33,160 bases of DNA from Paramoeba atlantica. Lineage: Eukaryota > Protista > Discosea. The notes under the pieces were generated by a model. It did no database searches. It was not told the DNA's origin and was given only the letters and a program-made list of their open reading frames with translations. The DNA is taken from NCBI GenBank assembly GCA_977017575.1, contig CDRNVI010000057.1, positions 1 to 33,160 on the forward strand, given 5' to 3'. Positions 1-30,789 of this stretch are shown here, piece by piece. Every line of letters begins with the position of its first letter. The stretch's first letter is position 1. The translations under genes were made by a program, and so were the position numbers.

Positions 1-35
1 AAAGCGGCCACACGCTTGTGAACGAAGAGAATCGG

Positions 36-40
36 AAAAA
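36..40 (-). terminator. RNA polymerase III oligo-T terminator (T5) directly 3' of the tRNA; present in all 20 units
   Basis: The minus strand reads ...TGGGCGC-G-TTTTT-CC. There is no encoded CCA, and a T-run follows the discriminator base, as in eukaryotic nuclear tRNA genes. Confidence 0.85.
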
Positions 41-121
41 CGCGCCCAGCAGGGTTCGAACCTGCGCGTGAGAACACACCTGATTTCAAGTCAGGCCCCT
101 TAACCACTTGGGTATGGACGC
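41..121 (-). tRNA. trnS: tRNA-Ser(UGA), eukaryotic nuclear type, copy 1
   Basis: Minus strand folds as GCGTCCA TA CCC AAGTGGTTAA GGG G CCTGA CT-TGA-AA TCAGG TGTGTTCTCACGC GCAGG TTCGAAC CCTGC TGGGCGC G. This gives a 7-bp acceptor stem, a long variable arm (GTG/CAC), G73, and anticodon TGA at + strand 86-88. Confidence 0.97.
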
Positions 122-232
122 TTCCGTCGTGGTGTGTCTCGAGTTTTGTGCGTTCATAGCGGTGCACTTTACCTTGCTTTTTCATGTGATAATGGAAACT
201 CCACGATTTCCCTCGCTGAACGATCCTTACAG

Positions 233-247
233 CCCCCCCCCCCCCCC
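233..247. repeat. Variable poly-C tract (poly-G on the tRNA strand), one per unit, C11-C16
   Basis: Lengths counted for units 1-20: 15,13,14,14,15,13,16,15,15,15,12,12,12,13,11,14,14,15,14,15. Confidence 0.9.
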
Positions 248-1522
248 AAGCAAGGCGACATTCACCACCGTAGGTCGCATTGATGAATGCAATGGTGGTT
301 TGAGTGTGCCCGTGCGAACGACCAAGAAGTGACACATACAATTTTGGCGATGACATAGTCGGGAAGAGAGGTTGAGCACGATGCGTTCACGTTTTGAACA
401 GAGCTACGAAATCTATCGGGAAGGGGTGGGTCTTTGCAACGGCCGGGCGAAGAAATTCGTTGTTTTATACCTGGATTGTGCAGAACGTGTTTCGGAAGGT
501 GTCACGTGGAAGGTGTTCCGCGCCATTGTGCGTCCTGTTTTCATTGTTCATGTGCTGCCCTGCCTTGCCCCAAGTAAAACATCTAGCGGAATTGTTCGAT
601 GCACGTGAAATCACGCCCTGTGCATCTAACGGAATCAGTGGGATCGAAGAAGACAAAGATCATTCTCCACGGAATGGGGTCGCACGGTGGATGCGAGTTT
701 CGTGTGAAACCGACGTTTTTCCACCACACTATTACAGTACGCGCGCGCCCTGCGATTCTGTTGCTTGGAAGAGCAGGTGAAATGTAAAAGAAGTATAGAG
801 AAATACAACCGCCCCCCCTTGAGATGCAGGAAGCTTGTGCAATCAAGCATTGGTTTGACTAAAATAATGTCCGATGACAACAAATTCTTGCGTTAGAAGA
901 GGGGAAGGCTTATAGTATCAGTGAAATCATGTGAAAATAGTGCCCAAAGCAAATATCAGAGCAAACCACGAGCGCTCAGAACACTCATCAAGTAGAAAGG
1001 GTTAAAATTTTTTAAGATTTGGTTCAGGGAAGAACGGACAAAAAGTGGACTGGCGAAACCCACGTTTTGATTCGCAATCATACTGACTAACGGAAAAACT
1101 CTATCTCTACAGAAAATATCGCTCGAAGCACGACCACTCAGGAGATGTAGCTTGCTGGTTCGGCGTTTCGCAATCGACGCACGCCATGCACGGAAGTCAT
1201 GCAAACGTCGCGTCCAGAGATATTTGAAAACCCCCCTTCACCGTGCAGGCGGAAAGAGGTAAATCTGAGGTCATTTTGAATTTTGAGATAGGATGCGCTA
1301 AAAAGCGGTACACTTTTCGGGCTTTTTCATTCGACACGCGCACGGCCATCTACTCATTCACCGTTTCTGCCGCCAAAACGTCATCTGCTACACAGGACAA
1401 AAAGACTTCATTTCAGCAAAGAAAATACCCTAAAATGTACCATTGCTTCTGCGATTCACGTTGCGTCTCTCCCGCGCGCCCAAAAGCGGCCACACGCTTG
1501 TGAACGAAGAGAATCGGAAAAA

Positions 1523-1603
1523 CGCGCCCAGCAGGGTTCGAACCTGCGCGTGAGAACACACCTGATTTCAAGTCAGGCCCCTTAACCACTTGGGTATGGA
1601 CGC
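1523..1603 (-). tRNA. trnS: tRNA-Ser(UGA) copy 2
   Basis: Identical to copy 1. Confidence 0.97.
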
Positions 1604-3002
1604 TTCCGTCGTGGTGTGTCTCGAGTTTTGTGCGTTCATAGCGGTGCACTTTACCTTGCTTTTTCATGTGATAATGGAAACTCCACGATTTCCCTCGCTG
1701 AACGATCCTTACAGCCCCCCCCCCCCCAAGCAAGGCGACATTCACCACCGTAGGTCGCATTGATGAATGCAATGGTGGTTTGAGTGTGCCCGTGCGAACG
1801 ACCAAGAAGTGACACATACAATTTTGGCGATGACATAGTCGGGAAGAGAGGTTGAGCACGATGCGTTCACGTTTTGAACAGAGCTACGAAATCTATCGGG
1901 AAGGGGTGGGTCTTTGCAACGGCCGGGCGAAGAAATTCGTTGTTTTATACCTGGATTGTGCAGAACGTGTTTCGGAAGGTGTCACGTGGAAGGTGTTCCG
2001 CGCCATTGTGCGTCCTGTTTTCATTGTTCATGTGCTGCCCTGCCTTGCCCCAAGTAAAACATCTAGCGGAATTGTTCGATGCACGTGAAATCACGCCCTG
2101 TGCATCTAACGGAATCAGTGGGATCGAAGAAGACAAAGATCATTCTCCACGGAATGGGGTCGCACGGTGGATGCGAGTTTCGTGTGAAACCGACGTTTTT
2201 CCACCACACTATTACAGTACGCGCGCGCCCTGCGATTCTGTTGCTTGGAAGAGCAGGTGAAATGTAAAAGAAGTATAGAGAAATACAACCGCCCCCCCTT
2301 GAGATGCAGGAAGCTTGTGCAATCAAGCATTGGTTTGACTAAAATAATGTCCGATGACAACAAATTCTTGCGTTAGAAGAGGGGAAGGCTTATAGTATCA
2401 GTGAAATCATGTGAAAATAGTGCCCAAAGCAAATATCAGAGCAAACCACGAGCGCTCAGAACACTCATCAAGTAGAAAGGGTTAAAATTTTTTAAGATTT
2501 GGTTCAGGGAAGAACGGACAAAAAGTGGACTGGCGAAACCCACGTTTTGATTCGCAATCATACTGACTAACGGAAAAACTCTATCTCTACAGAAAATATC
2601 GCTCGAAGCACGACCACTCAGGAGATGTAGCTTGCTGGTTCGGCGTTTCGCAATCGACGCACGCCATGCACGGAAGTCATGCAAACGTCGCGTCCAGAGA
2701 TATTTGAAAACCCCCCTTCACCGTGCAGGCGGAAAGAGGTAAATCTGAGGTCATTTTGAATTTTGAGATAGGATGCGCTAAAAAGCGGTACACTTTTCGG
2801 GCTTTTTCATTCGACACGCGCACGGCCATCTACTCATTCACCGTTTCTGCCGCCAAAACGTCATCTGCTACACAGGACAAAAAGACTTCATTTCAGCAAA
2901 GAAAATACCCTAAAATGTACCATTGCTTCTGCGATTCACGTTGCGTCTCTCCCGCGCGCCCAAAAGCGGCCACACGCTTGTGAACGAAGAGAATCGGAAA
3001 AA

Positions 3003-3083
3003 CGCGCCCAGCAGGGTTCGAACCTGCGCGTGAGAACACACCTGATTTCAAGTCAGGCCCCTTAACCACTTGGGTATGGACGC
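3003..3083 (-). tRNA. trnS: tRNA-Ser(UGA) copy 3
   Basis: Identical to copy 1. Confidence 0.97.
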
Positions 3084-4483
3084 TTCCGTCGTGGTGTGTC
3101 TCGAGTTTTGTGCGTTCATAGCGGTGCACTTTACCTTGCTTTTTCATGTGATAATGGAAACTCCACGATTTCCCTCGCTGAACGATCCTTACAGCCCCCC
3201 CCCCCCCCAAGCAAGGCGACATTCACCACCGTAGGTCGCATTGATGAATGCAATGGTGGTTTGAGTGTGCCCGTGCGAACGACCAAGAAGTGACACATAC
3301 AATTTTGGCGATGACATAGTCGGGAAGAGAGGTTGAGCACGATGCGTTCACGTTTTGAACAGAGCTACGAAATCTATCGGGAAGGGGTGGGTCTTTGCAA
3401 CGGCCGGGCGAAGAAATTCGTTGTTTTATACCTGGATTGTGCAGAACGTGTTTCGGAAGGTGTCACGTGGAAGGTGTTCCGCGCCATTGTGCGTCCTGTT
3501 TTCATTGTTCATGTGCTGCCCTGCCTTGCCCCAAGTAAAACATCTAGCGGAATTGTTCGATGCACGTGAAATCACGCCCTGTGCATCTAACGGAATCAGT
3601 GGGATCGAAGAAGACAAAGATCATTCTCCACGGAATGGGGTCGCACGGTGGATGCGAGTTTCGTGTGAAACCGACGTTTTTCCACCACACTATTACAGTA
3701 CGCGCGCGCCCTGCGATTCTGTTGCTTGGAAGAGCAGGTGAAATGTAAAAGAAGTATAGAGAAATACAACCGCCCCCCCTTGAGATGCAGGAAGCTTGTG
3801 CAATCAAGCATTGGTTTGACTAAAATAATGTCCGATGACAACAAATTCTTGCGTTAGAAGAGGGGAAGGCTTATAGTATCAGTGAAATCATGTGAAAATA
3901 GTGCCCAAAGCAAATATCAGAGCAAACCACGAGCGCTCAGAACACTCATCAAGTAGAAAGGGTTAAAATTTTTTAAGATTTGGTTCAGGGAAGAACGGAC
4001 AAAAAGTGGACTGGCGAAACCCACGTTTTGATTCGCAATCATACTGACTAACGGAAAAACTCTATCTCTACAGAAAATATCGCTCGAAGCACGACCACTC
4101 AGGAGATGTAGCTTGCTGGTTCGGCGTTTCGCAATCGACGCACGCCATGCACGGAAGTCATGCAAACGTCGCGTCCAGAGATATTTGAAAACCCCCCTTC
4201 ACCGTGCAGGCGGAAAGAGGTAAATCTGAGGTCATTTTGAATTTTGAGATAGGATGCGCTAAAAAGCGGTACACTTTTCGGGCTTTTTCATTCGACACGC
4301 GCACGGCCATCTACTCATTCACCGTTTCTGCCGCCAAAACGTCATCTGCTACACAGGACAAAAAGACTTCATTTCAGCAAAGAAAATACCCTAAAATGTA
4401 CCATTGCTTCTGCGATTCACGTTGCGTCTCTCCCGCGCGCCCAAAAGCGGCCACACGCTTGTGAACGAAGAGAATCGGAAAAA

Positions 4484-4564
4484 CGCGCCCAGCAGGGTTC
4501 GAACCTGCGCGTGAGAACACACCTGATTTCAAGTCAGGCCCCTTAACCACTTGGGTATGGACGC
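4484..4564 (-). tRNA. trnS: tRNA-Ser(UGA) copy 4
   Basis: Identical to copy 1. Confidence 0.97.
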
Positions 4565-5964
4565 TTCCGTCGTGGTGTGTCTCGAGTTTTGTGCGTTCAT
4601 AGCGGTGCACTTTACCTTGCTTTTTCATGTGATAATGGAAACTCCACGATTTCCCTCGCTGAACGATCCTTACAGCCCCCCCCCCCCCCAAGCAAGGCGA
4701 CATTCACCACCGTAGGTCGCATTGATGAATGCAATGGTGGTTTGAGTGTGCCCGTGCGAACGACCAAGAAGTGACACATACAATTTTGGCGATGACATAG
4801 TCGGGAAGAGAGGTTGAGCACGATGCGTTCACGTTTTGAACAGAGCTACGAAATCTATCGGGAAGGGGTGGGTCTTTGCAACGGCCGGGCGAAGAAATTC
4901 GTTGTTTTATACCTGGATTGTGCAGAACGTGTTTCGGAAGGTGTCACGTGGAAGGTGTTCCGCGCCATTGTGCGTCCTGTTTTCATTGTTCATGTGCTGC
5001 CCTGCCTTGCCCCAAGTAAAACATCTAGCGGAATTGTTCGATGCACGTGAAATCACGCCCTGTGCATCTAACGGAATCAGTGGGATCGAAGAAGACAAAG
5101 ATCATTCTCCACGGAATGGGGTCGCACGGTGGATGCGAGTTTCGTGTGAAACCGACGTTTTTCCACCACACTATTACAGTACGCGCGCGCCCTGCGATTC
5201 TGTTGCTTGGAAGAGCAGGTGAAATGTAAAAGAAGTATAGAGAAATACAACCGCCCCCCCTTGAGATGCAGGAAGCTTGTGCAATCAAGCATTGGTTTGA
5301 CTAAAATAATGTCCGATGACAACAAATTCTTGCGTTAGAAGAGGGGAAGGCTTATAGTATCAGTGAAATCATGTGAAAATAGTGCCCAAAGCAAATATCA
5401 GAGCAAACCACGAGCGCTCAGAACACTCATCAAGTAGAAAGGGTTAAAATTTTTTAAGATTTGGTTCAGGGAAGAACGGACAAAAAGTGGACTGGCGAAA
5501 CCCACGTTTTGATTCGCAATCATACTGACTAACGGAAAAACTCTATCTCTACAGAAAATATCGCTCGAAGCACGACCACTCAGGAGATGTAGCTTGCTGG
5601 TTCGGCGTTTCGCAATCGACGCACGCCATGCACGGAAGTCATGCAAACGTCGCGTCCAGAGATATTTGAAAACCCCCCTTCACCGTGCAGGCGGAAAGAG
5701 GTAAATCTGAGGTCATTTTGAATTTTGAGATAGGATGCGCTAAAAAGCGGTACACTTTTCGGGCTTTTTCATTCGACACGCGCACGGCCATCTACTCATT
5801 CACCGTTTCTGCCGCCAAAACGTCATCTGCTACACAGGACAAAAAGACTTCATTTCAGCAAAGAAAATACCCTAAAATGTACCATTGCTTCTGCGATTCA
5901 CGTTGCGTCTCTCCCGCGCGCCCAAAAGCGGCCACACGCTTGTGAACGAAGAGAATCGGAAAAA

Positions 5965-6045
5965 CGCGCCCAGCAGGGTTCGAACCTGCGCGTGAGAACA
6001 CACCTGATTTCAAGTCAGGCCCCTTAACCACTTGGGTATGGACGC
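5965..6045 (-). tRNA. trnS: tRNA-Ser(UGA) copy 5
   Basis: Identical to copy 1. Confidence 0.97.
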
Positions 6046-7446
6046 TTCCGTCGTGGTGTGTCTCGAGTTTTGTGCGTTCATAGCGGTGCACTTTACCTTG
6101 CTTTTTCATGTGATAATGGAAACTCCACGATTTCCCTCGCTGAACGATCCTTACAGCCCCCCCCCCCCCCCAAGCAAGGCGACATTCACCACCGTAGGTC
6201 GCATTGATGAATGCAATGGTGGTTTGAGTGTGCCCGTGCGAACGACCAAGAAGTGACACATACAATTTTGGCGATGACATAGTCGGGAAGAGAGGTTGAG
6301 CACGATGCGTTCACGTTTTGAACAGAGCTACGAAATCTATCGGGAAGGGGTGGGTCTTTGCAACGGCCGGGCGAAGAAATTCGTTGTTTTATACCTGGAT
6401 TGTGCAGAACGTGTTTCGGAAGGTGTCACGTGGAAGGTGTTCCGCGCCATTGTGCGTCCTGTTTTCATTGTTCATGTGCTGCCCTGCCTTGCCCCAAGTA
6501 AAACATCTAGCGGAATTGTTCGATGCACGTGAAATCACGCCCTGTGCATCTAACGGAATCAGTGGGATCGAAGAAGACAAAGATCATTCTCCACGGAATG
6601 GGGTCGCACGGTGGATGCGAGTTTCGTGTGAAACCGACGTTTTTCCACCACACTATTACAGTACGCGCGCGCCCTGCGATTCTGTTGCTTGGAAGAGCAG
6701 GTGAAATGTAAAAGAAGTATAGAGAAATACAACCGCCCCCCCTTGAGATGCAGGAAGCTTGTGCAATCAAGCATTGGTTTGACTAAAATAATGTCCGATG
6801 ACAACAAATTCTTGCGTTAGAAGAGGGGAAGGCTTATAGTATCAGTGAAATCATGTGAAAATAGTGCCCAAAGCAAATATCAGAGCAAACCACGAGCGCT
6901 CAGAACACTCATCAAGTAGAAAGGGTTAAAATTTTTTAAGATTTGGTTCAGGGAAGAACGGACAAAAAGTGGACTGGCGAAACCCACGTTTTGATTCGCA
7001 ATCATACTGACTAACGGAAAAACTCTATCTCTACAGAAAATATCGCTCGAAGCACGACCACTCAGGAGATGTAGCTTGCTGGTTCGGCGTTTCGCAATCG
7101 ACGCACGCCATGCACGGAAGTCATGCAAACGTCGCGTCCAGAGATATTTGAAAACCCCCCTTCACCGTGCAGGCGGAAAGAGGTAAATCTGAGGTCATTT
7201 TGAATTTTGAGATAGGATGCGCTAAAAAGCGGTACACTTTTCGGGCTTTTTCATTCGACACGCGCACGGCCATCTACTCATTCACCGTTTCTGCCGCCAA
7301 AACGTCATCTGCTACACAGGACAAAAAGACTTCATTTCAGCAAAGAAAATACCCTAAAATGTACCATTGCTTCTGCGATTCACGTTGCGTCTCTCCCGCG
7401 CGCCCAAAAGCGGCCACACGCTTGTGAACGAAGAGAATCGGAAAAA

Positions 7447-7527
7447 CGCGCCCAGCAGGGTTCGAACCTGCGCGTGAGAACACACCTGATTTCAAGTCAG
7501 GCCCCTTAACCACTTGGGTATGGACGC
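7447..7527 (-). tRNA. trnS: tRNA-Ser(UGA) copy 6
   Basis: Identical to copy 1. Confidence 0.97.
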
Positions 7528-8926
7528 TTCCGTCGTGGTGTGTCTCGAGTTTTGTGCGTTCATAGCGGTGCACTTTACCTTGCTTTTTCATGTGATAATG
7601 GAAACTCCACGATTTCCCTCGCTGAACGATCCTTACAGCCCCCCCCCCCCCAAGCAAGGCGACATTCACCACCGTAGGTCGCATTGATGAATGCAATGGT
7701 GGTTTGAGTGTGCCCGTGCGAACGACCAAGAAGTGACACATACAATTTTGGCGATGACATAGTCGGGAAGAGAGGTTGAGCACGATGCGTTCACGTTTTG
7801 AACAGAGCTACGAAATCTATCGGGAAGGGGTGGGTCTTTGCAACGGCCGGGCGAAGAAATTCGTTGTTTTATACCTGGATTGTGCAGAACGTGTTTCGGA
7901 AGGTGTCACGTGGAAGGTGTTCCGCGCCATTGTGCGTCCTGTTTTCATTGTTCATGTGCTGCCCTGCCTTGCCCCAAGTAAAACATCTAGCGGAATTGTT
8001 CGATGCACGTGAAATCACGCCCTGTGCATCTAACGGAATCAGTGGGATCGAAGAAGACAAAGATCATTCTCCACGGAATGGGGTCGCACGGTGGATGCGA
8101 GTTTCGTGTGAAACCGACGTTTTTCCACCACACTATTACAGTACGCGCGCGCCCTGCGATTCTGTTGCTTGGAAGAGCAGGTGAAATGTAAAAGAAGTAT
8201 AGAGAAATACAACCGCCCCCCCTTGAGATGCAGGAAGCTTGTGCAATCAAGCATTGGTTTGACTAAAATAATGTCCGATGACAACAAATTCTTGCGTTAG
8301 AAGAGGGGAAGGCTTATAGTATCAGTGAAATCATGTGAAAATAGTGCCCAAAGCAAATATCAGAGCAAACCACGAGCGCTCAGAACACTCATCAAGTAGA
8401 AAGGGTTAAAATTTTTTAAGATTTGGTTCAGGGAAGAACGGACAAAAAGTGGACTGGCGAAACCCACGTTTTGATTCGCAATCATACTGACTAACGGAAA
8501 AACTCTATCTCTACAGAAAATATCGCTCGAAGCACGACCACTCAGGAGATGTAGCTTGCTGGTTCGGCGTTTCGCAATCGACGCACGCCATGCACGGAAG
8601 TCATGCAAACGTCGCGTCCAGAGATATTTGAAAACCCCCCTTCACCGTGCAGGCGGAAAGAGGTAAATCTGAGGTCATTTTGAATTTTGAGATAGGATGC
8701 GCTAAAAAGCGGTACACGTTTCGGGTTTTTTCATTCGACACGCGCACGGCCATCTACTCATTCACCGTTTCTGCCGCCAAAACGTCATCTGCTACACAGG
8801 ACAAAAAGACTTCATTTCAGCAAAGAAAATACCCTAAAATGTACCATTGCTTCTGCGATTCACGTTGCGTCTCTCCCGCGCGCCCAAAAGCGGCCACACG
8901 CTTGTGAACGAAGAGAATCGGAAAAA

Positions 8927-9007
8927 CGCGCCCAGCAGGGTTCGAACCTGCGCGTGAGAACACACCTGATTTCAAGTCAGGCCCCTTAACCACTTGGGTA
9001 TGGACGC
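8927..9007 (-). tRNA. trnS: tRNA-Ser(UGA) copy 7
   Basis: Identical to copy 1. Confidence 0.97.
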
Positions 9008-10409
9008 TTCCGTCGTGGTGTGTCTCGAGTTTTGTGCGTTCATAGCGGTGCACTTTACCTTGCTTTTTCATGTGATAATGGAAACTCCACGATTTCCCTC
9101 GCTGAACGATCCTTACAGCCCCCCCCCCCCCCCCAAGCAAGGCGACATTCACCACCGTAGGTCGCATTGATGAATGCAATGGTGGTTTGAGTGTGCCCGT
9201 GCGAACGACCAAGAAGTGACACATACAATTTTGGCGATGACATAGTCGGGAAGAGAGGTTGAGCACGATGCGTTCACGTTTTGAACAGAGCTACGAAATC
9301 TATCGGGAAGGGGTGGGTCTTTGCAACGGCCGGGCGAAGAAATTCGTTGTTTTATACCTGGATTGTGCAGAACGTGTTTCGGAAGGTGTCACGTGGAAGG
9401 TGTTCCGCGCCATTGTGCGTCCTGTTTTCATTGTTCATGTGCTGCCCTGCCTTGCCCCAAGTAAAACATCTAGCGGAATTGTTCGATGCACGTGAAATCA
9501 CGCCCTGTGCATCTAACGGAATCAGTGGGATCGAAGAAGACAAAGATCATTCTCCACGGAATGGGGTCGCACGGTGGATGCGAGTTTCGTGTGAAACCGA
9601 CGTTTTTCCACCACACTATTACAGTACGCGCGCGCCCTGCGATTCTGTTGCTTGGAAGAGCAGGTGAAATGTAAAAGAAGTATAGAGAAATACAACCGCC
9701 CCCCCTTGAGATGCAGGAAGCTTGTGCAATCAAGCATTGGTTTGACTAAAATAATGTCCGATGACAACAAATTCTTGCGTTAGAAGAGGGGAAGGCTTAT
9801 AGTATCAGTGAAATCATGTGAAAATAGTGCCCAAAGCAAATATCAGAGCAAACCACGAGCGCTCAGAACACTCATCAAGTAGAAAGGGTTAAAATTTTTT
9901 AAGATTTGTTTCAGGGAAGAACGGACAAAAAGTGGACTGGCGAAACCCACGTTTTGATTCGCAATCATACTGACTAACGGAAAAACTCTATCTCTACAGA
10001 AAATATCGCTCGAAGCACGACCACTCAGGAGATGTAGCTTGCTGGTTCGGCGTTTCGCAATCGACGCACGCCATGCACGGAAGTCATGCAAACGTCGCGT
10101 CCAGAGATATTTGAAAACCCCCCTTCACCGTGCAGGCGGAAAGAGGTAAATCTGAGGTCATTTTGAATTTTGAGATAGGATGCGCTAAAAAGCGGTACAC
10201 TTTTCGGGTTTTTTCATTCGACACGCGCACGGCCATCTACTCATTCACCGTTTCTGCCGCCAAAACGTCATCTGCTACACAGGACAAAAAGACTTCATTT
10301 CAGCAAAGAAAATACCCTAAAATGTACCATTGCTTCTGCGATTCACGTTGCGTCTCTCCCGCGCGCCCAAAAGCGGCCACACGCTTGTGAACGAAGAGAA
10401 TCGGAAAAA

Positions 10410-10490
10410 CGCGCCCAGCAGGGTTCGAACCTGCGCGTGAGAACACACCTGATTTCAAGTCAGGCCCCTTAACCACTTGGGTATGGACGC
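10410..10490 (-). tRNA. trnS: tRNA-Ser(UGA) copy 8
   Basis: Identical to copy 1. Confidence 0.97.
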
Positions 10491-17895: not shown

Positions 17896-19292
17896 TTCCG
17901 TCGTGGTGTGTCTCGAGTTTTGTGCGTTCATAGCGGTGCACTTTACCTTGCTTTTTCATGTGATAATGGAAACTCCACGATTTCCCTCGCTGAACGATCC
18001 TTACAGCCCCCCCCCCCCAAGCAAGGCGACATTCACCACCGTAGGTCGCATTGATGAATGCAATGGTGGTTTGAGTGTGCCCGTGCGAACGACCAAGAAG
18101 TGACACATACAATTTTGGCGATGACATAGTCGGGAAGAGAGGTTGAGCACGATGCGTTCACGTTTTGAACAGAGCTACGAAATCTATCGGGAAGGGGTGG
18201 GTCTTTGCAACGGCCGGGCGAAGAAATTCGTTGTTTTATACCTGGATTGTGCAGAACGTGTTTCGGAAGGTGTCACGTGGAAGGTGTTCCGCGCCATTGT
18301 GCGTCCTGTTTTCATTGTTCATGTGCTGCCCTGCCTTGCCCCAAGTAAAACATCTAGCGGAATTGTTCGATGCACGTGAAATCACGCCCTGCGCATCTAA
18401 CGGAATCAGTGGGATCGAAGAAGACAAAGATCATTCTCCACGGAATGGGGTCGCACGGTGGATGCGAGTTTCGTGTGAAACCGACGTTTTTCCACCACAC
18501 TATTACAGTACGCGCGCGCCCTGCGATTCTGTTGCTTGGAAGAGCAGGTGAAATGTAAAAGAAGTATAGAGAAATACAACCGCCCCCCTTGAGATGCAGG
18601 AAGCTTGTGCAATCAAGCATTGGTTTGACTAAAATAATGTCCGATGACAACAAATTCTTGCGTTAGAAGAGGGGAAGGCTTATAGTATCAGTGAAATCAT
18701 GTGAAAATAGTGCCCAAAGCAAATATCAGAGCAAACCACGAGCGCTCAGAACACTCATCAAGTAGAAAGGGTTAAAATTTTTTAAGATTTGGTTCAGGGA
18801 AGAACGGACAAAAAGTGGACTGGCGAAACCCACGTTTTGATTCGCAATCATACTGACTAACGGAAAAACTCTATCTCTACAGAAAATATCGCTCGAAGCA
18901 CGACCACTCAGGAGATGTAGCTTGCTGGTTCGGCGTTTAGCAATCGACGCACGCCATGCACGGAAGTCATGCAAACGTCGCGTCCAGAGATATTTGAAAA
19001 CCCCCCTTCACCGTGCAGGCGGAAAGAGGTAAATCTGAGGTCATTTTGAATTTTGAGATAGGATGCGCTAAAAAGCGGTACACTTTTCGGGCTTTTTCAT
19101 TCGACACGCGCACGGCCATCTACTCATTCACCGTTTCTGCCGCCAAAACGTCATCTGCTACACAGGACAAAAAGACTTCATTTCAGCAAAGAAAATACAC
19201 TAAAATGTACCATTGCTTCTGCGATTCACGTTGCGTCTCTCCCGCGCGCCCAAAAGCGGCCACACGCTTGTGAACGAAGAGAATCGGAAAAA

Positions 19293-19373
19293 CGCGCCCA
19301 GCAGGGTTCGAACCTGCGCGTGAGAACACACCTGATTTCAAGTCAGGCCCCTTAACCACTTGGGTATGGACGC
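19293..19373 (-). tRNA. trnS: tRNA-Ser(UGA) copy 14
   Basis: Identical to copy 1. Confidence 0.97.
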
Positions 19374-20772
19374 TTCCGTCGTGGTGTGTCTCGAGTTTTG
19401 TGCGTTCATAGCGGTGCACTTTACCTTGCTTTTTCATGTGATAATGGAAACTCCACGATTTCCCTCGCTGAACGATCCTTACAGCCCCCCCCCCCCCAAG
19501 CAAGGCGACATTCACCACCGTAGGTCGCATTGATGAATGCAATGGTGGTTTGAGTGTGCCCGTGCGAACGACCAAGAAGTGACACATACAATTTTGGCGA
19601 TGACATAGTCGGGAAGAGAGGTTGAGCACGATGCGTTCACGTTTTGAACAGAGCTACGAAATCTATCGGGAAGGGGTGGGTCTTTGCAACGGCCGGGCGA
19701 AGAAATTCGTTGTTTTATACCTGGATTGTGCAGAACGTGTTTCGGAAGGTGTCACGTGGAAGGTGTTCCGCGCCATTGTGCGTCCTGTTTTCATTGTTCA
19801 TGTGCTGCCCTGCCTTGCCCCAAGTAAAACATCTAGCGGAATTGTTCGATGCACGTGAAATCACGCCCTGCGCATCTAACGGAATCAGTGGGATCGAAGA
19901 AGACAAAGATCATTCTCCACGGAATGGGGTCGCACGGTGGATGCGAGTTTCGTGTGAAACCGACGTTTTTCCACCACACTATTACAGTACGCGCGCGCCC
20001 TGCGATTCTGTTGCTTGGAAGAGCAGGTGAAATGTAAAAGAAGTATAGAGAAATACAACCGCCCCCCCTTGAGATGCAGGAAGCTTGTGCAATCAAGCAT
20101 TGGTTTGACTAAAATAATGTCCGATGACAACAAATTCTTGCGTTAGAAGAGGGGAAGGCTTATAGTATCAGTGAAATCATGTGAAAATAGTGCCCAAAGC
20201 AAATATCAGAGCAAACCACGAGCGCTCAGAACACTCATCAAGTAGAAAGGGTTAAAATTTTTTAAGATTTGGTTCAGGGAAGAACGGACAAAAAGTGGAC
20301 TGGCGAAACCCACGTTTTGATTCGCAATCATACTGACTAACGGAAAAACTCTATCTCTACGGAAAATATCGCTCGAAGCACGACCACTCAGGAGATGTAG
20401 CTTGCTGGTTCGGCGTTTAGCAATCGACGCACGCCATGCACGGAAGTCATGCAAACGTCGCGTCCAGAGATATTTGAAAACCCCCCTTCACCGTGCAGGC
20501 GGAAAGAGGTAAATCTGAGGTCATTTTGAATTTTGAGATAGGATGGGCTAAAAAGCGGTACACTTTTCGGGCTTTTTCATTCGACACGCGCACGGCCATC
20601 TACTCATTCACCGTTTCTGCCGCCAAAACGTCATCTGCTACACAGGACAAAAAGACTTCATTTCAGCAAAGAAAATACCCTAAAATGTACCATTGCTTCT
20701 GCGATTCACGTTGCGTCTCTCCCGCGCGCCCAAAAGCGGCCACACGCTTGTGAACGAAGAGAATCGGAAAAA

Positions 20773-20853
20773 CGCGCCCAGCAGGGTTCGAACCTGCGCG
20801 TGAGAACACACCTGATTTCAAGTCAGGCCCCTTAACCACTTGGGTATGGACGC
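20773..20853 (-). tRNA. trnS: tRNA-Ser(UGA) copy 15
   Basis: Identical to copy 1. Confidence 0.97.
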
Positions 20854-22250
20854 TTCCGTCGTGGTGTGTCTCGAGTTTTGTGCGTTCATAGCGGTGCACT
20901 TTACCTTGCTTTTTCATGTGATAATGGAAACTCCACGATTTCCCTCGCTGAACGATCCTTACAGCCCCCCCCCCCAAGCAAGGCGACATTCACCACCGTA
21001 GGTCGCATTGATGAATGCAATGGTGGTTTGAGTGTGCCCGTGCGAACGACCAAGAAGTGACACATACAATTTTGGCGATGACATAGTCGGGAAGAGAGGT
21101 TGAGCACGATGCGTTCACGTTTTGAACAGAGCTACGAAATCTATCGGGAAGGGGTGGGTCTTTGCAACGGCCGGGCGAAGAAATTCGTTGTTTTATACCT
21201 GGATTGTGCAGAACGTGTTTCGGAAGGTGTCACGTGGAAGGTGTTCCGCGCCATTGTGCGTCCTGTTTTCATTGTTCATGTGCTGCCCTGCCTTGCCCCA
21301 AGTAAAACATCTAGCGGAATTGTTCGATGCACGTGAAATCACGCCCTGCGCATCTAACGGAATCAGTGGGATCGAAGAAGACAAAGATCATTCTCCACGG
21401 AATGGGGTCGCACGGTGGATGCGAGTTTCGTGTGAAACCGACGTTTTTCCACCACACTATTACAGTACGCGCGCGCCCTGCGATTCTGTTGCTTGGAAGA
21501 GCAGGTGAAATGTAAAAGAAGTATAGAGAAATACAACCGCCCCCCCTTGAGATGCAGGAAGCTTGTGCAATCAAGCATTGGTTTGACTAAAATAATGTCC
21601 GATGACAACAAATTCTTGCGTTAGAAGAGGGGAAGGCTTATAGTATCAGTGAAATCATGTGAAAATAGTGCCCAAAGCAAATATCAGAGCAAACCACGAG
21701 CGCTCAGAACACTCATCAAGTAGAAAGGGTTAAAATTTTTTAAGATTTGGTTCAGGGAAGAACGGACAAAAAGTGGACTGGCGAAACCCACGTTTTGATT
21801 CGCAATCATACTGACTAACGGAAAAACTCTATCTCTACAGAAAATATCGCTCGAAGCACGACCACTCAGGAGATGTAGCTTGCTGGTTCGGCGTTTAGCA
21901 ATCGACGCACGCCATGCACGGAAGTCATGCAAACGTCGCGTCCAGAGATATTTGAAAACCCCCCTTCACCGTGCAGGCGGAAAGAGGTAAATCTGAGGTC
22001 ATTTTGAATTTTGAGATAGGATGCGCTAAAAAGCGGTACACTTTTCGGGCTTTTTCATTCGACACGCGCACGGCCATCTACTCATTCACCGTTTCTGCCG
22101 CCAAAACGTCATCTGCTACACAGGACAAAAAGACTTCATTTCAGCAAAGAAAATACACTAAAATGTACCATTGCTTCTGCGATTCACGTTGCGTCTCTCC
22201 CGCGCGCCCAAAAGCGGCCACACGCTTGTGAACGAAGAGAATCGGAAAAA

Positions 22251-22331
22251 CGCGCCCAGCAGGGTTCGAACCTGCGCGTGAGAACACACCTGATTTCAAG
22301 TCAGTCCCCTTAACCACTTGGGTATGGACGC
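22251..22331 (-). tRNA. trnS: tRNA-Ser(UGA) copy 16, variant C27A (A27:G43 mismatch)
   Basis: The + strand has g>t at 22305 (tcagt instead of tcagg), which breaks the top pair of the anticodon stem. Confidence 0.85.
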
Positions 22332-23731
22332 TTCCGTCGTGGTGTGTCTCGAGTTTTGTGCGTTCATAGCGGTGCACTTTACCTTGCTTTTTCATGTGAT
22401 AATGGAAACTCCACGATTTCCCTCGCTGAACGATCCTTACAGCCCCCCCCCCCCCCAAGCAAGGCGACATTCACCACCGTAGGTCGCATTGATGAATGCA
22501 ATGGTGGTTTGAGTGTGCCCGTGCGAACGACCAAGAAGTGACACATACAATTTTGGCGATGACATAGTCGGGAAGAGAGGTTGAGCACGATGCGTTCACG
22601 TTTTGAACAGAGCTACGAAATCTATCGGGAAGGGGTGGGTCTTTGCAACGGCCGGGCGAAGAAATTCGTTGTTTTATACCTGGATTGTGCAGAACGTGTT
22701 TCGGAAGGTGTCACGTGGAAGGTGTTCCGCGCCATTGTGCGTCCTGTTTTCATTGTTCATGTGCTGCCCTGCCTTGCCCCAAGTAAAACATCTAGCGGAA
22801 TTGTTCGATGCACGTGAAATCACGCCCTGCGCATCTAACGGAATCAGTGGGATCGAAGAAGACAAAGATCATTCTCCACGGAATGGGGTCGCACGGTGGA
22901 TGCGAGTTTCGTGTGAAACCGACGTTTTTCCACCACACTATTACAGTACGCGCGCGCCCTGCGATTCTGTTGCTTGGAAGAGCAGGTGAAATGTAAAAGA
23001 AGTATAGAGAAATACAACCGCCCCCCCTTGAGATGCAGGAAGCTTGTGCAATCAAGCATTGGTTTGACTAAAATAATGTCCGATGACAACAAATTCTTGC
23101 GTTAGAAGAGGGGAAGGCTTATAGTATCAGTGAAATCATGTGAAAATAGTGCCCAAAGCAAATATCAGAGCAAACCACGAGCGCTCAGAACACTCATCAA
23201 GTAGAAAGGGTTAAAATTTTTTAAGATTTGGTTCAGGGAAGAACGGACAAAAAGTGGACTGGCGAAACCCACGTTTTGATTCGCAATCATACTGACTAAC
23301 GGAAAAACTCTATCTCTACAGAAAATATCGCTCGAAGCACGACCACTCAGGAGATGTAGCTTGCTGGTTCGGCGTTTCGCAATCGACGCACGCCATGCAC
23401 GGAAGTCATGCAAACGTCGCGTCCAGAGATATTTGAAAACCCCCCTTCACCGTGCAGGCGGAAAGAGGTAAATCTGAGGTCATTTTGAATTTTGAGATAG
23501 GATGGGCTAAAAAGCGGTACACTTTTCGGGCTTTTTCATTCGACACGCGCACGGCCATCTACTCATTCACCGTTTCTGCCGCCAAAACGTCATCTGCTAC
23601 ACAGGACAAAAAGACTTCATTTCAGCAAAGAAAATACCCTAAAATGTACCATTGCTTCTGCGATTCACGTTGCGTCTCTCCCGCGCGCCCAAAAGCGGCC
23701 ACACGCTTGTGAACGAAGAGAATCGGAAAAA

Positions 23732-23812
23732 CGCGCCCAGCAGGGTTCGAACCTGCGCGTGAGAACACACCTGATTTCAAGTCAGGCCCCTTAACCACTT
23801 GGGTATGGACGC
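23732..23812 (-). tRNA. trnS: tRNA-Ser(UGA) copy 17
   Basis: Identical to copy 1. Confidence 0.97.
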
Positions 23813-25212
23813 TTCCGTCGTGGTGTGTCTCGAGTTTTGTGCGTTCATAGCGGTGCACTTTACCTTGCTTTTTCATGTGATAATGGAAACTCCACGATTT
23901 CCCTCGCTGAACGATCCTTACAGCCCCCCCCCCCCCCAAGCAAGGCGACATTCACCACCGTAGGTCGCATTGATGAATGCAATGGTGGTTTGAGTGTGCC
24001 CGTGCGAACGACCAAGAAGTGACACATACAATTTTGGCGATGACATAGTCGGGAAGAGAGGTTGAGCACGATGCGTTCACGTTTTGAACAGAGCTACGAA
24101 ATCTATCGGGAAGGGGTGGGTCTTTGCAACGGCCGGGCGAAGAAATTCGTTGTTTTATACCTGGATTGTGCAGAACGTGTTTCGGAAGGTGTCACGTGGA
24201 AGGTGTTCCGCGCCATTGTGCGTCCTGTTTTCATTGTTCATGTGCTGCCCTGCCTTGCCCCAAGTAAAACATCTAGCGGAATTGTTCGATGCACGTGAAA
24301 TCACGCCCTGCGCATCTAACGGAATCAGTGGGATCGAAGAAGACAAAGATCATTCTCCACGGAATGGGGTCGCACGGTGGATGCGAGTTTCGTGTGAAAC
24401 CGACGTTTTTCCACCACACTATTACAGTACGCGCGCGCCCTGCGATTCTGTTGCTTGGAAGAGCAGGTGAAATGTAAAAGAAGTATAGAGAAATACAACC
24501 GCCCCCCCTTGAGATGCAGGAAGCTTGTGCAATCAAGCATTGGTTTGACTAAAATAATGTCCGATGACAACAAATTCTTGCGTTAGAAGAGGGGAAGGCT
24601 TATAGTATCAGTGAAATCATGTGAAAATAGTGCCCAAAGCAAATATCAGAGCAAACCACGAGCGCTCAGAACACTCATCAAGTAGAAAGGGTTAAAATTT
24701 TTTAAGATTTGGTTCAGGGAAGAACGGACAAAAAGTGGACTGGCGAAACCCACGTTTTGATTCGCAATCATACTGACTAACGGAAAAACTCTATCTCTAC
24801 AGAAAATATCGCTCGAAGCACGACCACTCAGGAGATGTAGCTTGCTGGTTCGGCGTTTAGCAATCGACGCACGCCATGCACGGAAGTCATGCAAACGTCG
24901 CGTCCAGAGATATTTGAAAACCCCCCTTCACCGTGCAGGCGGAAAGAGGTAAATCTGAGGTCATTTTGAATTTTGAGATAGGATGCGCTAAAAAGCGGTA
25001 CACTTTTCGGGCTTTTTCATTCGACACGCGCACGGCCATCTACTCATTCACCGTTTCTGCCGCCAAAACGTCATCTGCTACACAGGACAAAAAGACTTCA
25101 TTTCAGCAAAGAAAATACACTAAAATGTACCATTGCTTCTGCGATTCACGTTGCGTCTCTCCCGCGCGCCCAAAAGCGGCCACACGCTTGTGAACGAAGA
25201 GAATCGGAAAAA

Positions 25213-25293
25213 CGCGCCCAGCAGGGTTCGAACCTGCGCGTGAGAACACACCTGATTTCAAGTCAGTCCCCTTAACCACTTGGGTATGGACGT
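25213..25293 (-). pseudogene. trnS: tRNA-Ser(UGA) copy 18, G1A + C27A, probable tRNA pseudogene
   Basis: g>t at 25267 gives A27:G43, and c>t at 25293 gives A1:C72. tRNA identity is certain; loss of function is inferred. Confidence 0.6.
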
Positions 25294-26694
25294 TTCCGTC
25301 GTGGTGTGTCTCGAGTTTTGTGCGTTCATAGCGGTGCACTTTACCTTGCTTTTTCATGTGATAATGGAAACTCCACGATTTCCCTCGCTGAACGATCCTT
25401 ACAGCCCCCCCCCCCCCCCAAGCAAGGCGACATTCACCACCGTAGGTCGCATTGATGAATGCAATGGTGGTTTGAGTGTGCCCGTGCGAACGACCAAGAA
25501 GTGACACATACAATTTTGGCGATGACATAGTCGGGAAGAGAGGTTGAGCACGATGCGTTCACGTTTTGAACAGAGCTACGAAATCTATCGGGAAGGGGTG
25601 GGTCTTTGCAACGGCCGGGCGAAGAAATTCGTTGTTTTATACCTGGATTGTGCAGAACGTGTTTCGGAAGGTGTCACGTGGAAGGTGTTCCGCGCCATTG
25701 TGCGTCCTGTTTTCATTGTTCATGTGCTGCCCTGCCTTGCCCCAAGTAAAACATCTAGCGGAATTGTTCGATGCACGTGAAATCACGCCCTGCGCATCTA
25801 ACGGAATCAGTGGGATCGAAGAAGACAAAGATCATTCTCCACGGAATGGGGTCGCACGGTGGATGCGAGTTTCGTGTGAAACCGACGTTTTTCCACCACA
25901 CTATTACAGTACGCGCGCGCCCTGCGATTCTGTTGCTTGGAAGAGCAGGTGAAATGTAAAAGAAGTATAGAGAAATACAACCGCCCCCCCTTGAGATGCA
26001 GGAAGCTTGTGCAATCAAGCATTGGTTTGACTAAAATAATGTCCGATGACAACAAATTCTTGCGTTAGAAGAGGGGAAGGCTTATAGTATCAGTGAAATC
26101 ATGTGAAAATAGTGCCCAAAGCAAATATCAGAGCAAACCACGAGCGCTCAGAACACTCATCAAGTAGAAAGGGTTAAAATTTTTTAAGATTTGGTTCAGG
26201 GAAGAACGGACAAAAAGTGGACTGGCGAAACCCACGTTTTGATTCGCAATCATACTGACTAACGGAAAAACTCTATCTCTACAGAAAATATCGCTCGAAG
26301 CACGACCACTCAGGAGATGTAGCTTGCTGGTTCGGCGTTTAGCAATCGACGCACGCCATGCACGGAAGTCATGCAAACGTCGCGTCCAGAGATATTTGAA
26401 AACCCCCCTTCACCGTGCAGGCGGAAAGAGGTAAATCTGAGGTCATTTTGAATTTTGAGATAGGATGCGCTAAAAAGCGGTACACTTTTCGGGCTTTTTC
26501 ATTCGACACGCGCACGGCCATCTACTCATTCACCGTTTCTGCCGCCAAAACGTCATCTGCTACACAGGACAAAAAGACTTCATTTCAGCAAAGAAAATAC
26601 ACTAAAATGTACCATTGCTTCTGCGATTCACGTTGCGTCTCTCCCGCGCGCCCAAAAGCGGCCACACGCTTGTGAACGAAGAGAATCGGAAAAA

Positions 26695-26775
26695 CGCGCC
26701 CAGCAGGGTTCGAACCTGCGCGTGAGAACACACCTGATTTCAAGTCAGTCCCCTTAACCACTTGGGTATGGACGT
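26695..26775 (-). pseudogene. trnS: tRNA-Ser(UGA) copy 19, G1A + C27A, probable tRNA pseudogene
   Basis: g>t at 26749 and c>t at 26775, plus an upstream g>c at 26785. Loss of function is inferred. Confidence 0.6.
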
Positions 26776-28176
26776 TTCCGTCGTCGTGTGTCTCGAGTTT
26801 TGTGCGTTCATAGCGGTGCACTTTACCTTGCTTTTTCATGTGATAATGGAAACTCCACGATTTCCCTCGCTGAACGATCCTTACAGCCCCCCCCCCCCCC
26901 AAGCAAGGCGACATTCACCACCGTAGGTCGCATTGATGAATGCAATGGTGGTTTGAGTGTGCCCGTGCGAACGACCAAGAAGTGACACATACAATTTTGG
27001 CGATGACATAGTCGGGAAGAGAGGTTGAGCACGATGCGTTCACGTTTTGAACAGAGCTACGAAATCTATCGGGAAGGGGTGGGTCTTTGCAACGGCCGGG
27101 CGAAGAAATTCGTTGTTTTATACCTGGATTGTGCAGAACGTGTTTCGGAAGGTGTCACGTGGAAGGTGTTCCGCGCCATTGTGCGTCCTGTTTTCATTGT
27201 TCATGTGCTGCCCTGCCTTGCCCCAAGTAAAACATCTAGCGGAATTGTTCGATGCACGTGAAATCACGCCCTGCGCATCTAACGGAATCAGTGGGATCGA
27301 AGAAGACAAAGATCATTCTCCACGGAATGGGGTCGCACGGTGGATGCGAGTTTCGTGTGAAACCGACGTTTTTTCCACCACACTATTACAGTACGCGCGC
27401 GCCCCTGCGATTCTGTTGCTTGGAAGAGCAGGTGAAATGTAAAAGAAGTATAGAGAAATACAACCGCCCCCCTTGAGATGCAGGAAGCTTGTGCAATCAA
27501 GCATTGGTTTGACTAAAATAATGTCCGATGACAACAAATACTTGCGTTAGAAGAGGGGAAGGCTTATAGTATCAGTGAAATCATGTGAAAATAGTGCCCA
27601 AAGCAAATATCAGAGCAAACCACGAGCGCTCAGAACACTCATCAAGTAGAAAGGGTTAAAATTTTTTAAGATTTGGTTCAGGGAAGAACGGACAAAAAGT
27701 GGACTGGCGAAACCCACGTTTTGATTCGCAATCATACTGACTAACGGAAAAACTCTATCTCTACAGAAAATATCGCTCGAAGCACGACCACTCAGGAGAT
27801 GTAGCTTGCTGGTTCGGCGTTTAGCAATCGACGCACGCCATGCACGGAAGTCATGCAAACGTCGCGTCCAGAGATATTTGAAAACCCCCCTTCACCGTGC
27901 AGGCGGAAAGAGGTAAATCTGAGGTCATTTTGAATTTTGAGATAGGATGCGCTAAAAAGCGGTACACTTTTCGGGCTTTTTCATTCGACACGCGCACGGC
28001 CATCTACTCATTCACCGTTTCTGCCGCCAAAACGTCATCTGCTACACAGGACAAAAAGACTTCATTTCAGCAAAGAAAATACACTAAAATGTACCATTGC
28101 TTCTGCGATTCACGTTGCGTCTCTCCCGCGCGCCCAAAAGCGGCCACACGCTTGTGAACGAAGAGAATCGGAAAAA

Positions 28177-28257
28177 CGCGCCCAGCAGGGTTCGAACCTG
28201 CGCGTGAGAACACACCTGATTTCAAGTCAGGCCCCTTAACCACTCGGGTATGGACGC
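28177..28257 (-). tRNA. trnS: tRNA-Ser(UGA) copy 20, variant A13G
   Basis: t>c at 28245 changes the D-arm to CCC-GAGTGGTTAA-GGG (G13:A22). All stems are intact. Confidence 0.95.
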
Positions 28258-29588
28258 TTCCGTCGTGGTGTGTCTCGAGTTTTGTGCGTTCATAGCGGTG
28301 CACTTTACCTTGCTTTTTCATGTGATAATGGAAACTCCACGATTTCCCTCGCTGAACGATCCTTACAGCCCCCCCCCCCCCCCAAGCAAGGCGACATTCA
28401 CCACCGTAGGTCGCATTGATGAATGCAATGGTGGTTTGAGTGTGCCCGTGCGAACGACCAAGAAGTGACACATACAATTTTGGCGATGACATAGTCGGGA
28501 AGAGAGGTTGAGCACGATGCGTTCACGTTTTGAACAGAGCTACGAAATCTATCGGGAAGGGGTGGGTCTTTGCAACGGCCGGGCGAAGAAATTCGTTGTT
28601 TTATACCTGGATTGTGCAGAACGTGTTTCGGAAGGTGTCACGTGGAAGGTGTTCCGCGCCATTGTGCGTCCTGTTTTCATTGTTCATGTGCTGCCCTGCT
28701 TTGCCCCAAGTAAAACATCTAGCGGAATTGTTCGATGCACGTGAAATCACGCCCTGCGTATCTAACGGAATCAGTGGGATCGAAGAAGACAAATATCATT
28801 CTCCACGGAATGGGGTCGCACGGTGGATGCGAGTTTCGTGTGAAACCGACGTTTTTCCACCACACTATTACAGTACGCGCGCGCCCTGCGATTCTGTTGC
28901 TTGGAAGAGCAGGTGAAATGTAAAAGAAGTATAGAGAAATACAACCGCCCCCCCTTGAGATGCAGGAAGCTTGTGCAATCAAGCATTGGTTTGACTAAAA
29001 TAATGTCCGATGACAACAAATTCTTGCGTTAGAAGAGGGGAAGGCTTATAGTATCAGTGAAATCATGTGAAAATAGTGCCCAAAGCAAATATCAGAGCAA
29101 ACCACGAGCGCTCAGAACACTCATCAAGTAGAAAGGGTTAAAATTTTTTAAGATTTGGTTCAGGGAAGAACGGACAAAAAGTGGACTGGCGAAACCCACG
29201 TTTTGATTCGCAATCATACTGACTAACGGAAAAACTCTATCTCTACAGAAAATATCGCTCGAAGCACGACCACTCAGGAGATGTAGCTTGCTGGTTCGGC
29301 GTTTCGCAATCGACGCACGCCATGCACGGAAGTCATGCAAACGTCGCGTCCAGAGATATTTGAAAACCCCCCTTCACCGTGCAGGCGGAAAGAGGTAAAT
29401 CTGAGGTCATTTTGAATTTTGAGATAGGATGCGCTAAAAAGCGGTACACTTTTCGGGCTTTTTCATTCGACACGCGCACGGCCATCTACTCATTCACCGT
29501 TTCTGCCGCCAAAACGTCATCTGCTACACAGGACAAAAAGACTTCATTTCAGCAAAGAAAATACACTAAAATGTACCATTGCTTCTGC

Positions 29589-29590
29589 GT
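29589..29590. other. Abrupt junction between the eukaryote-type tRNA array and bacterial-type DNA
   Basis: The unit continues gcttctgcg-attcacg in all other copies, but here reads gcttctgcg-tttttcacaagg. Composition falls from the high-40s % GC to roughly 40% or below (estimated by eye from sampled lines). Confidence 0.95.
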
Positions 29591-30311: not shown

Positions 30312-30312
30312 A

Positions 30313-30762: not shown

Positions 30763-30789
30763 CCGCAATTCAAACATTATCGAGCTGAT

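Follow-up and report, generated by a model that had tools for sequence, protein, structure and literature searches.

A tandem tRNA-Ser(UGA) array, probably neutral and satellite-like, on a protist contig with a bacterial tail

The window analysed here is the entire contig C57 (33,160 nt) of a 45.7-Mb eukaryotic assembly. Its positions 1-29589 are a real tandem array of one eukaryotic protist tRNA-Ser gene. The account that fits best, with a probability of roughly 0.8 as a whole, is that of a neutral, satellite-like tRNA array followed by a chimeric bacterial tail at 29590-33160.

Architecture of the array and its tRNA gene

ARAGORN and the Rfam model RF00005, used at its gathering score, agree on a count of exactly 20 tRNA-Ser(UGA) genes, each 81 nt long and all on the minus strand (Table 1), in agreement with the original prediction of at least 20 tandem copies in 1.48-kb units. 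As in a tandem tRNA array, many homogenised copies (20 as assembled) lie head to tail, from the first gene at 41-121 to the last at 28177-28257, with a gene-to-gene spacing of 1478-1483 bp and 98.3-100% identity among units; the length differences are mostly due to a poly-C tract. The array is open at its left edge, which is the contig end, as was predicted, and stops on the right in mid-unit (consensus position 1412 of 1481).

The gene has the long variable arm, UGA anticodon and G73 of a class II tRNA-Ser, and scores 61.2 bits against a gathering score of 29. Read from the sequence against the textbook A/B box consensus, which is general knowledge, the B box GGTTCGAACCC matches at 11 of 11 positions and the A box at 10 of 11. 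The trailer TTTTTCCGATTC is present in 20 of 20 copies, TTTTT follows each, and CCA is encoded in none. Because of the missing CCA, the T5 trailer and the B box, the array genes are assigned, as far as sequence signals go, to the eukaryotic nuclear Pol III type.

The tRNA sequence is identical in 16 of the 20 units. The exceptions carry C27A (units 16, 18, and 19, the last two with G1A in addition) or A13G (unit 20); the weakened copies adopt a minimum-energy fold without the cloverleaf. Sequence variants are common to adjoining units, position-specific, and graded along the array. These features bear on the possibility that an assembler expanded one or two real units into 20: assemblies often mis-size long tandem repeats, and the contig, chimeric at one end, is an orphan fragment. 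Such an artefact is nevertheless very improbable, given the graded position-specific variants and the four further contigs on which the 1.48-kb unit forms arrays; these have variant blocks of their own, and one is tied into a 449-kb contig through unique flanks.

Table 1. Coordinates of the features in the window
Feature	Position	Strand	Remarks
Tandem array, 19 full and 1 partial 1.48-kb unit	1..29589	-	one tRNA-Ser(UGA) per unit
Representative intact tRNA-Ser(UGA), 81 nt	23732..23812	-	61.2 bits; cloverleaf with long variable arm
Other tRNA-Ser(UGA), starts	41, 1523, 3003, 4484, 5965, 7447, 8927, 10410, 11892, 13374	-	
Other tRNA-Ser(UGA), starts (continued)	14856, 16335, 17815, 19293, 20773, 22251, 25213, 26695, 28177	-	
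Weakened tRNA copies toward array edge	within 22251..26775	-	
Weakened copy, C27A	22251..22331	-	Rfam 56 bits vs 61.2 for the intact copy
Weakened copies, C27A and G1A	25213..25293, 26695..26775	-	Rfam 49.8 bits vs 61.2
T5 run directly 3' of the discriminator base	28172..28176	-	predicted Pol III terminator; after every copy
Poly-C tract of variable length	28383..28397	+	every unit (~consensus position 192)
Blunt junction of array and bacterial DNA	29589..29590	.	G200 alignment begins exactly at 29590
Gammaproteobacterial chromosome fragment	29590..33160	+	GC 39.7%; = G200:C1:604030-607599
yqgE/algH family gene, bacterial	29736..30311	+	NF001266, 223 bits, above cut-off
ruvX (yqgF) Holliday junction resolvase-like gene, bacterial	30292..30762	+	TIGR00250, 143 bits
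pyrB, aspartate carbamoyltransferase catalytic subunit, bacterial	30850..31788	+	NF002032, 366 bits; PyrB 100% identical to the G200 copy
Hybrid histidine kinase/response regulator gene, bacterial	31789..33109	-	two frames

Spacer, sister arrays and host

The spacer was described at the outset as GC-balanced, CpG-rich and non-repetitive, unlike that of Entamoeba, and the unit as holding one 81-nt tRNA and no second one. Both descriptions hold, the contrast being with the units of Entamoeba histolytica: the spacer has a GC content of 48.5% and a CpG observed/expected ratio of 1.15, TRF finds no internal short repeats in the unit, and Rfam at E<=1 returns neither a second tRNA nor another family, only chance-level matches. 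None of six spacer ORFs has a Pfam match. Between array families, the first 102 consensus positions show 0 differences as opposed to ~4.6% elsewhere, the invariant part being only the tRNA and ~20 nt upstream of it. A second RNA or protein gene in the spacer was rejected, as Rfam, Pfam, and between-family conservation are all empty outside the tRNA; the same evidence led to rejection of a spacer small RNA driven by the promoter boxes of the tRNA, as known for trypanosomatid snRNA genes. In these comparisons the spacer appears to be free of genes and of constraint.

Across the assembly, ~110 copies of tRNA-Ser(UGA) are found on eight contigs; several of the array contigs resemble duplicates, apparently one locus assembled more than once, and 110 therefore overcounts the haploid number. 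Arrays are present on C56, C57, C72, C96, and C106, while on C87 the gene is multiplied in a separate, unrelated 6.1-kb repeat and has damaged B boxes. At the homologous locus C56/C72 (flanks 99.91% identical) the array lies between an 18-bp satellite, whose edge is seen on C72, and a (GAAGAAAGAG)n cap, seen on C56. In C56, a G-G mismatch in the T stem is common to 8 consecutive units. An end-to-end join of C57 and C72 was rejected, since both are open on the tRNA-downstream side.

The array host is most likely a kinetoplastid-like (Euglenozoa) protist, to judge by one protein and a tRNA family likeness. The top five PDB matches of the ribosomal protein uL3 of the assembly are Leishmania/Trypanosoma ribosome chains (590-609 bits; the next match has 549), and the uL3-bearing contig C53 carries a single-locus tRNA-Ser(CGA) with the same D loop and variable arm as the array tRNA. 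DNA of a second eukaryote seems to be present in the assembly as well.

Possible origins of the array and comparison with known arrays

Unequal exchange and gene conversion inside a single chromosome are the most likely source of the array and of its uniformity. Conservation is confined to the tRNA and the stretch directly 5' of it; the 1.4-kb spacer would be drifting freely, and damaged tRNA copies would have spread in blocks. Free drift of the spacer and the block spread of damaged copies suggest the behavior of a chromosome-end satellite in which a tRNA gene happens to be included rather than of a dosage-tuned family; at the fully assembled homologous locus, the array is flanked by the 18-bp satellite and the terminal purine repeat.

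A demand for a very large supply of tRNA-Ser(UGA), with all copies active, is a rather improbable explanation. It might account for the perfect conservation of the tRNA and 5' flank between array families that are ~5% apart elsewhere, for the majority of the copies being intact, and for the multiplication of the same gene in the unrelated repeat on C87. However, UCA is the least used serine codon (9% of Ser codons in a small sample of 5,635 codons, in which some ORFs are possibly spurious), which bears out the initial view that the copies exceed codon need; T-stem or anticodon-stem mismatches occur in blocks of units, the B boxes of the C87 copies are damaged, and in Entamoeba gene number is independent of codon use (PMC2652664). 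Other tRNAs on the kinetoplastid-type contigs are not multiplied likewise: genes for Arg, Lys, Trp, and Ser(CGA) stand alone, belong to a small mixed cluster, or turn up on pairs of contigs, which differs from the genome-wide arrays of Entamoeba, in which most tRNA species are arrayed.

A structural role, in which tRNA genes bound by TFIIIC/Pol III would separate the genes from the terminal repeat as a barrier or buffer, is unlikely as well. The C56 array directly adjoins the (GAAGAAAGAG)n cap and has the satellite on its inward side, every Entamoeba chromosome has tRNA arrays at one end (bioRxiv 10.64898/2026.07.06.736064), and tRNA genes are reported at domain boundaries in T. cruzi (PMC12204681) and man (PMC4041453); this layout, however, is seen at one locus only, possibly represented by two haplotypes. 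A more specific form of the idea is doubtful too: the array as a working chromosome-end part, i.e., a block bound by Pol III/TFIIIC that separates the gene-bearing chromosome from a non-TTAGGG purine-repeat cap, uniform within each homologue and 5% apart between homologues with 99.9% identical flanks. If true, it would be a parallel to the tRNA arrays that Entamoeba chromosomes have at one end. As the sister array on C56 ends at a chromosome-end-like purine repeat, the term subtelomeric from the original prediction fits, but nothing here shows the structural or boundary function proposed along with it. The blocks of stem-breaking mutations and the unconstrained spacer are better explained by neutral, satellite-like amplification.

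The array was also thought to be a possible distinct protist type, which does not stand: published examples of tandem tRNA arrays, at chromosome ends as well as in other places, already exist for Entamoeba, Schizosaccharomyces japonicus, and Arabidopsis. Entamoeba shares with C57 long head-to-tail arrays of short units with near-identical tRNA gene copies (PMC2652664; bioRxiv 10.64898/2026.07.06.736064), a location at chromosome ends, and a copy number unrelated to codon use. There, almost every tRNA belongs to an array (25-28 array types, ~4500 genes, >10% of the genome) in units of up to 5-6 tRNAs, sometimes with 5S RNA, those of E. histolytica being AT-rich with short tandem repeats (PMC2652664; bioRxiv 10.64898/2026.07.06.736064); here, in contrast, one tRNA species is arrayed, the lineage (Euglenozoa) is unrelated, and each unit combines one gene with a 1.4-kb spacer that is GC-balanced and non-repetitive. 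The tRNA-Ser/Tyr/Tyr cluster on chromosome 1 of Arabidopsis thaliana (~27 units of ~1.5 kb over almost 40 kb; PMC10701932) is nearly equal in size and copy number, contains tRNA-Ser and has no other genes, but it is interstitial, with three tRNA genes per unit and an unrelated unit sequence. The Arabidopsis tRNA-Cys cluster on chromosome 5 is reported to be epigenetically silenced (PMC10701932). The S. japonicus centromeric and telomere-side arrays (PMC7619369) and the human 1q23.3 VNTR (PMC4041453) are likewise tRNA tandem repeats of variable copy number at chromosome landmarks, but have several tRNAs per unit (5.6 kb and 7.3 kb), with 5S rDNA or CTCF sites; the S. japonicus arrays are also much larger (PMC7619369).

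Trypanosomatids have few tRNA genes, most of them in one or two copies (PMC12204681); an array of at least 20 copies of an ordinary tRNA at a chromosome end is therefore an outlier in a related protist. For kinetoplastids, the only tandem multiplication of a tRNA gene reported is the 11-copy tRNA-Sec tandem of Trypanosoma cruzi, whose remaining tRNA genes have one or two copies each; the tRNA-Sec genes lie within a Pol II unit, interspersed with a kinase gene, and, according to the authors, are likely transcribed by Pol II, as in T. brucei (PMC12204681). The C57 units, unlike these, are gene-free between the tRNAs, and the tRNA has Pol III signals. The array adds another independent example of tRNA arrays at chromosome landmarks to those of Entamoeba and fission yeast.

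Bacterial tail and its junction

The contig was originally treated as uniform, and the bacterial, chimeric tail was missed. It matches a separate 2.45-Mb gammaproteobacterial chromosome (G200) at 3569 of 3571 bases (99.94% identity), and the junction is blunt, with no microhomology found at 29589/29590. G200 runs on past the breakpoint with its own sequence, and no array unit was found in it. In the search for related loci, the relatives among the matches listed reached ~52%. G200 DNA recurs on other contigs: C89:1-10000 matches it at 997-1007 kb, and the last 2 kb of C56, beyond the terminal repeat, at 1.763 Mb; the pieces at these two contig ends include the rpoB-rpoC-fusA core operon.

As G200 pieces also end two other contigs, the tail would be a chimera and not a gene transfer: DNA of a co-sequenced bacterium, foreign to the locus, probably joined by an assembly or library error (a chimeric read or over-extension by the assembler at the contig end). 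A real, very recent horizontal transfer beside the tRNA array in the protist chromosome is extremely improbable. The clean join within one contig could speak for it, and foreign DNA is known to insert at tRNA genes and in subtelomeres. Yet the tail is almost identical to a free-standing chromosome instead of having diverged from a donor, it is still bacterial in GC and CpG content, the contig never goes back to host DNA but has bacterial DNA up to its end, the other two contigs end in different G200 pieces (the core operon among them), and the bacterial tail of C56 sits beyond the chromosome-end repeat. The C57 tail and the C56 and C89 ends need trimming before bacterial gene transfers or chromosome ends are reported.

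Within the tail, an additional T at 32728, compared with G200, splits the frame of the kinase/regulator gene. The 1536-nt SSU rRNAs on C112-C126 and C221 were considered as 16S of the bacterium and rejected, being only 66-75% identical to gammaproteobacterial 16S; with this identity and scores of ~716 bits, they look mitochondrial.

The tRNA-Ser(UGA) array and its units

The original prediction of at least 20 tandem tRNA-Ser(UGA) copies in units of about 1.48 kb was correct in both description and coordinates, as ARAGORN and the Rfam tRNA model (49.8-61.3 bits; gathering score 29) recovered the same 20 genes, each lying on the minus strand. Successive genes lie 1478-1483 bp apart, and aligned units of the contig, C57, are 98.3-100% identical. 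Most of the length variation is carried by a single poly-C tract, while point variants are common to adjacent units and form a gradient along the array. Unit 8 has gained 7 bp (TATCAGT) after consensus position 874 and lost another 7 bp (CGGTACA) at consensus positions 1265-1271, which leaves it no longer or shorter than before. The spacer had been described as GC-balanced, CpG-rich, non-repetitive and devoid of a second tRNA, and this holds: the array portion has a GC content of 48.5% and a CpG observed/expected ratio of 1.15, TRF detected no short repeats, and no further Rfam family was found within a unit even at E≤1. None of six spacer ORFs searched against Pfam gave a match.

The arrayed genes are eukaryotic Pol III genes. 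CCA is encoded in none of the 20 copies, and TTTTT directly follows the gene in every one. As read from the sequence, the B box (GGTTCGAACCC) matches the textbook consensus perfectly and the A box agrees with it at 10 of 11 positions. The main variant folds as a cloverleaf in which the variable arm is long, and 16 copies have an identical tRNA sequence. Near the right edge, the uppermost position of the anticodon stem is altered by C27A in units 16, 18 and 19, with G1A additionally present in units 18 and 19; Rfam scores of these copies are lower, and their minimum-energy folds no longer form a cloverleaf.

Coordinates of features in C57 and related contigs
Feature	Location	Strand	Method or counterpart
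tRNA-Ser(UGA), first of 20 (81 nt each)	C57:41-121	minus	ARAGORN
tRNA-Ser(UGA), last of 20	C57:28177-28257	minus	ARAGORN
Unit 8	C57:10410-11891		
Bacterial tail with ORFs yqgE/algH, ruvX, pyrB, hybrid histidine kinase	C57:29590-33160		G200:C1:604030-607599
Unique flank, 2243 bp	C56:399758-402000		C72:52001-54243
Satellite (CCATCGTTTTTGGTAAGA)n, ~6.4 kb	C72:54060-60415		
Satellite (CCATCGTTTTTGGTAAGA)n, start	C56:401817		
Far array end (region)	C56:437808-448883		
6.1-kb repeat	C87:18200-38500		
Bacterial head, ~12.1 kb	C89:1-12150		
Matched part of the head	C89:1-10000		G200:997447-1007445
Last 2 kb of C56			G200:1763113-1765112

Host genome and array families

The window is contig C57 in its entirety, and the assembly to which it belongs comprises 45.7 Mb in 248 contigs. 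Its cytosolic uL3 gene has no introns, and the five best matches of the protein among solved structures (590-609 bits; next 549) are Leishmania and Trypanosoma ribosome chains. Contig C53 combines uL3 with a three-tRNA cluster including a tRNA-Ser(CGA), whose D loop and variable arm are the same as in the arrayed gene; the latter thus belongs to the tRNA-Ser family of the uL3-bearing genome. Since many genes and contigs occur in near-identical pairs, the assembly is partly duplicated, with haplotypes as the probable cause.

Contigs C137-C185 (e.g., C143, C144, C149, and C177) hold many dispersed copies of tRNA-Lys(CUU), tRNA-Lys(UUU), tRNA-Thr and tRNA-Met, accompanied by 1.9-kb 18S genes. As these tRNAs are strongly unlike the kinetoplastid-type genes in sequence and in their T-rich flanks, this DNA may come from a second eukaryote in the sample, possibly the host amoeba. 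Each of eleven small contigs (C112-C126 and C221) contains one SSU rRNA of 1533-1538 nt. With a score of only ~716 bits against the bacterial model and 66-75% identity to the 16S of gammaproteobacteria, this gene resembles a mitochondrial rRNA that was assembled repeatedly.

A 47-nt tRNA core occurs 110 times in the assembly with at most two mismatches (reversed control, 0); the 100 matches listed fall on C56 (21), C57 (20), C72 (17), C96 (16), C106 (13), C87 (11), C38 (1), and C43 (1). Units of C57 and C72 are 99.5-99.8% identical and share a variant pool, while those of C56, C96 and C106 form a second family, ~94.7-95% identical to the first. Common blocks of marked variants suggest that C96 is probably an alternative assembly of the C56 locus; C106, which also carries the composite units of C96, may be another. 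In these 3.05-kb composites, copied along the array in both contigs, ~1.55 kb of other DNA interrupts the 1.48-kb unit near consensus 685-695. The C87 repeat is unlike the 1.48-kb unit and has only the tRNA in common with it; each repeat bears two tRNA-Ser(UGA) genes (spacings 1739 and 4347 bp) with altered T loops or damaged B boxes.

C56 and C72 share a tRNA-Arg(UCU) ~55 kb upstream, the same 17-bp and 10-bp flank repeats, a unique flank of 99.91% identity, and the same 18-bp satellite, which adjoins a truncated tRNA at the inner array edge in C72 and starts no more than ~3.5 kb before the array in C56. Judged by this common flank, the two contigs are two versions of a single main locus. The C56 array stops inside a unit at its far end and is followed by at least 1.5 kb of a (GAAGAAAGAG)n cap, a probable chromosome end. 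Array units of C56 and C72 are ~5% apart versus 0.1% for their flanks, with identity above 99% within each array; homogenisation within chromosomes would be the simplest reading.

Constraint and possible origin of the array

Between the two families, consensus positions 1-102, which cover the tRNA and ~20 nt of 5' flank, show no differences, while ~4.6% divergence is distributed over the rest of the unit, and the comparison revealed no second conserved block. Damaged copies spread as readily as good ones: a T-stem G-G mismatch is common to eight consecutive C56 units, and a variable-arm change occurs in other blocks. Comparison of codon usage, which had been proposed, showed UCA to be the rarest serine codon (9%; UCG 15%) in a small sample of 5,635 codons from ORFs of kinetoplastid-type loci. 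The proposed check for similar arrays of other isoacceptors showed the remaining tRNAs of the kinetoplastid-type contigs to be present singly or in contig pairs. Together, the single conserved block, the damaged blocks, the rarity of UCA and the unarrayed state of other tRNAs favour a satellite-like amplification of the tRNA unit through unequal exchange, in which selection would act only to keep enough good copies. Alternatively, the array may serve as a barrier or chromosome-end buffer.

The proposal of a distinct protist array type is countered by earlier descriptions of tandem tRNA arrays. They are well described in Entamoeba (PMC2652664), where they lie at one end of every chromosome (bioRxiv 10.64898/2026.07.06.736064), and are known from Arabidopsis (27 Ser-Tyr-Tyr units spanning nearly 40 kb; PMC10701932), S. 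japonicus (centromeric arrays and one next to a telomere; PMC7619369), and man (the 1q23.3 tRNA VNTR; PMC4041453). Trypanosomatids have few tRNA genes, most of them in one or two copies; the exception reported is a T. cruzi set of 11 tRNA-Sec genes with a kinase gene interspersed (PMC12204681). No report of a comparable array in a kinetoplastid was found in the open-access literature. New here are the C57 copy of the array, the two-family comparison, and the demonstration that the C57 tail is a piece of a separate bacterial chromosome.

Bacterial DNA at contig ends

From position 29590, beyond a blunt join, the GC content falls to 39.7%. In a sample of 401 gammaproteobacterial genomes, the tail PyrB was 100% identical in one, G200, a single contig of 2.45 Mb. 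The tail agrees with it at 3569 of 3571 bases; of the two differences, one is an additional T at 32728, to which the kinase gene owes its apparent frameshift. Past the breakpoint G200 continues with genes of its own, and no array unit was found in this chromosome. Contig C89 begins with a bacterial head (fusA-rpsG-rpoC-rpoB-rplL-rplJ), most of which is ~100% identical to G200, and passes into eukaryotic DNA, in which a kinetoplastid-type uL3 lies at 62 kb. G200 sequence at 100% identity also makes up the final 2 kb of C56, beyond the terminal repeat. That three contigs are joined terminally to three different parts of one bacterial chromosome, in one case past the probable chromosome end, points to chimeric reads or over-extension and argues against gene transfer into the protist. 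Within the C89 head, rpoC is split over three reading frames and rpsG over two.
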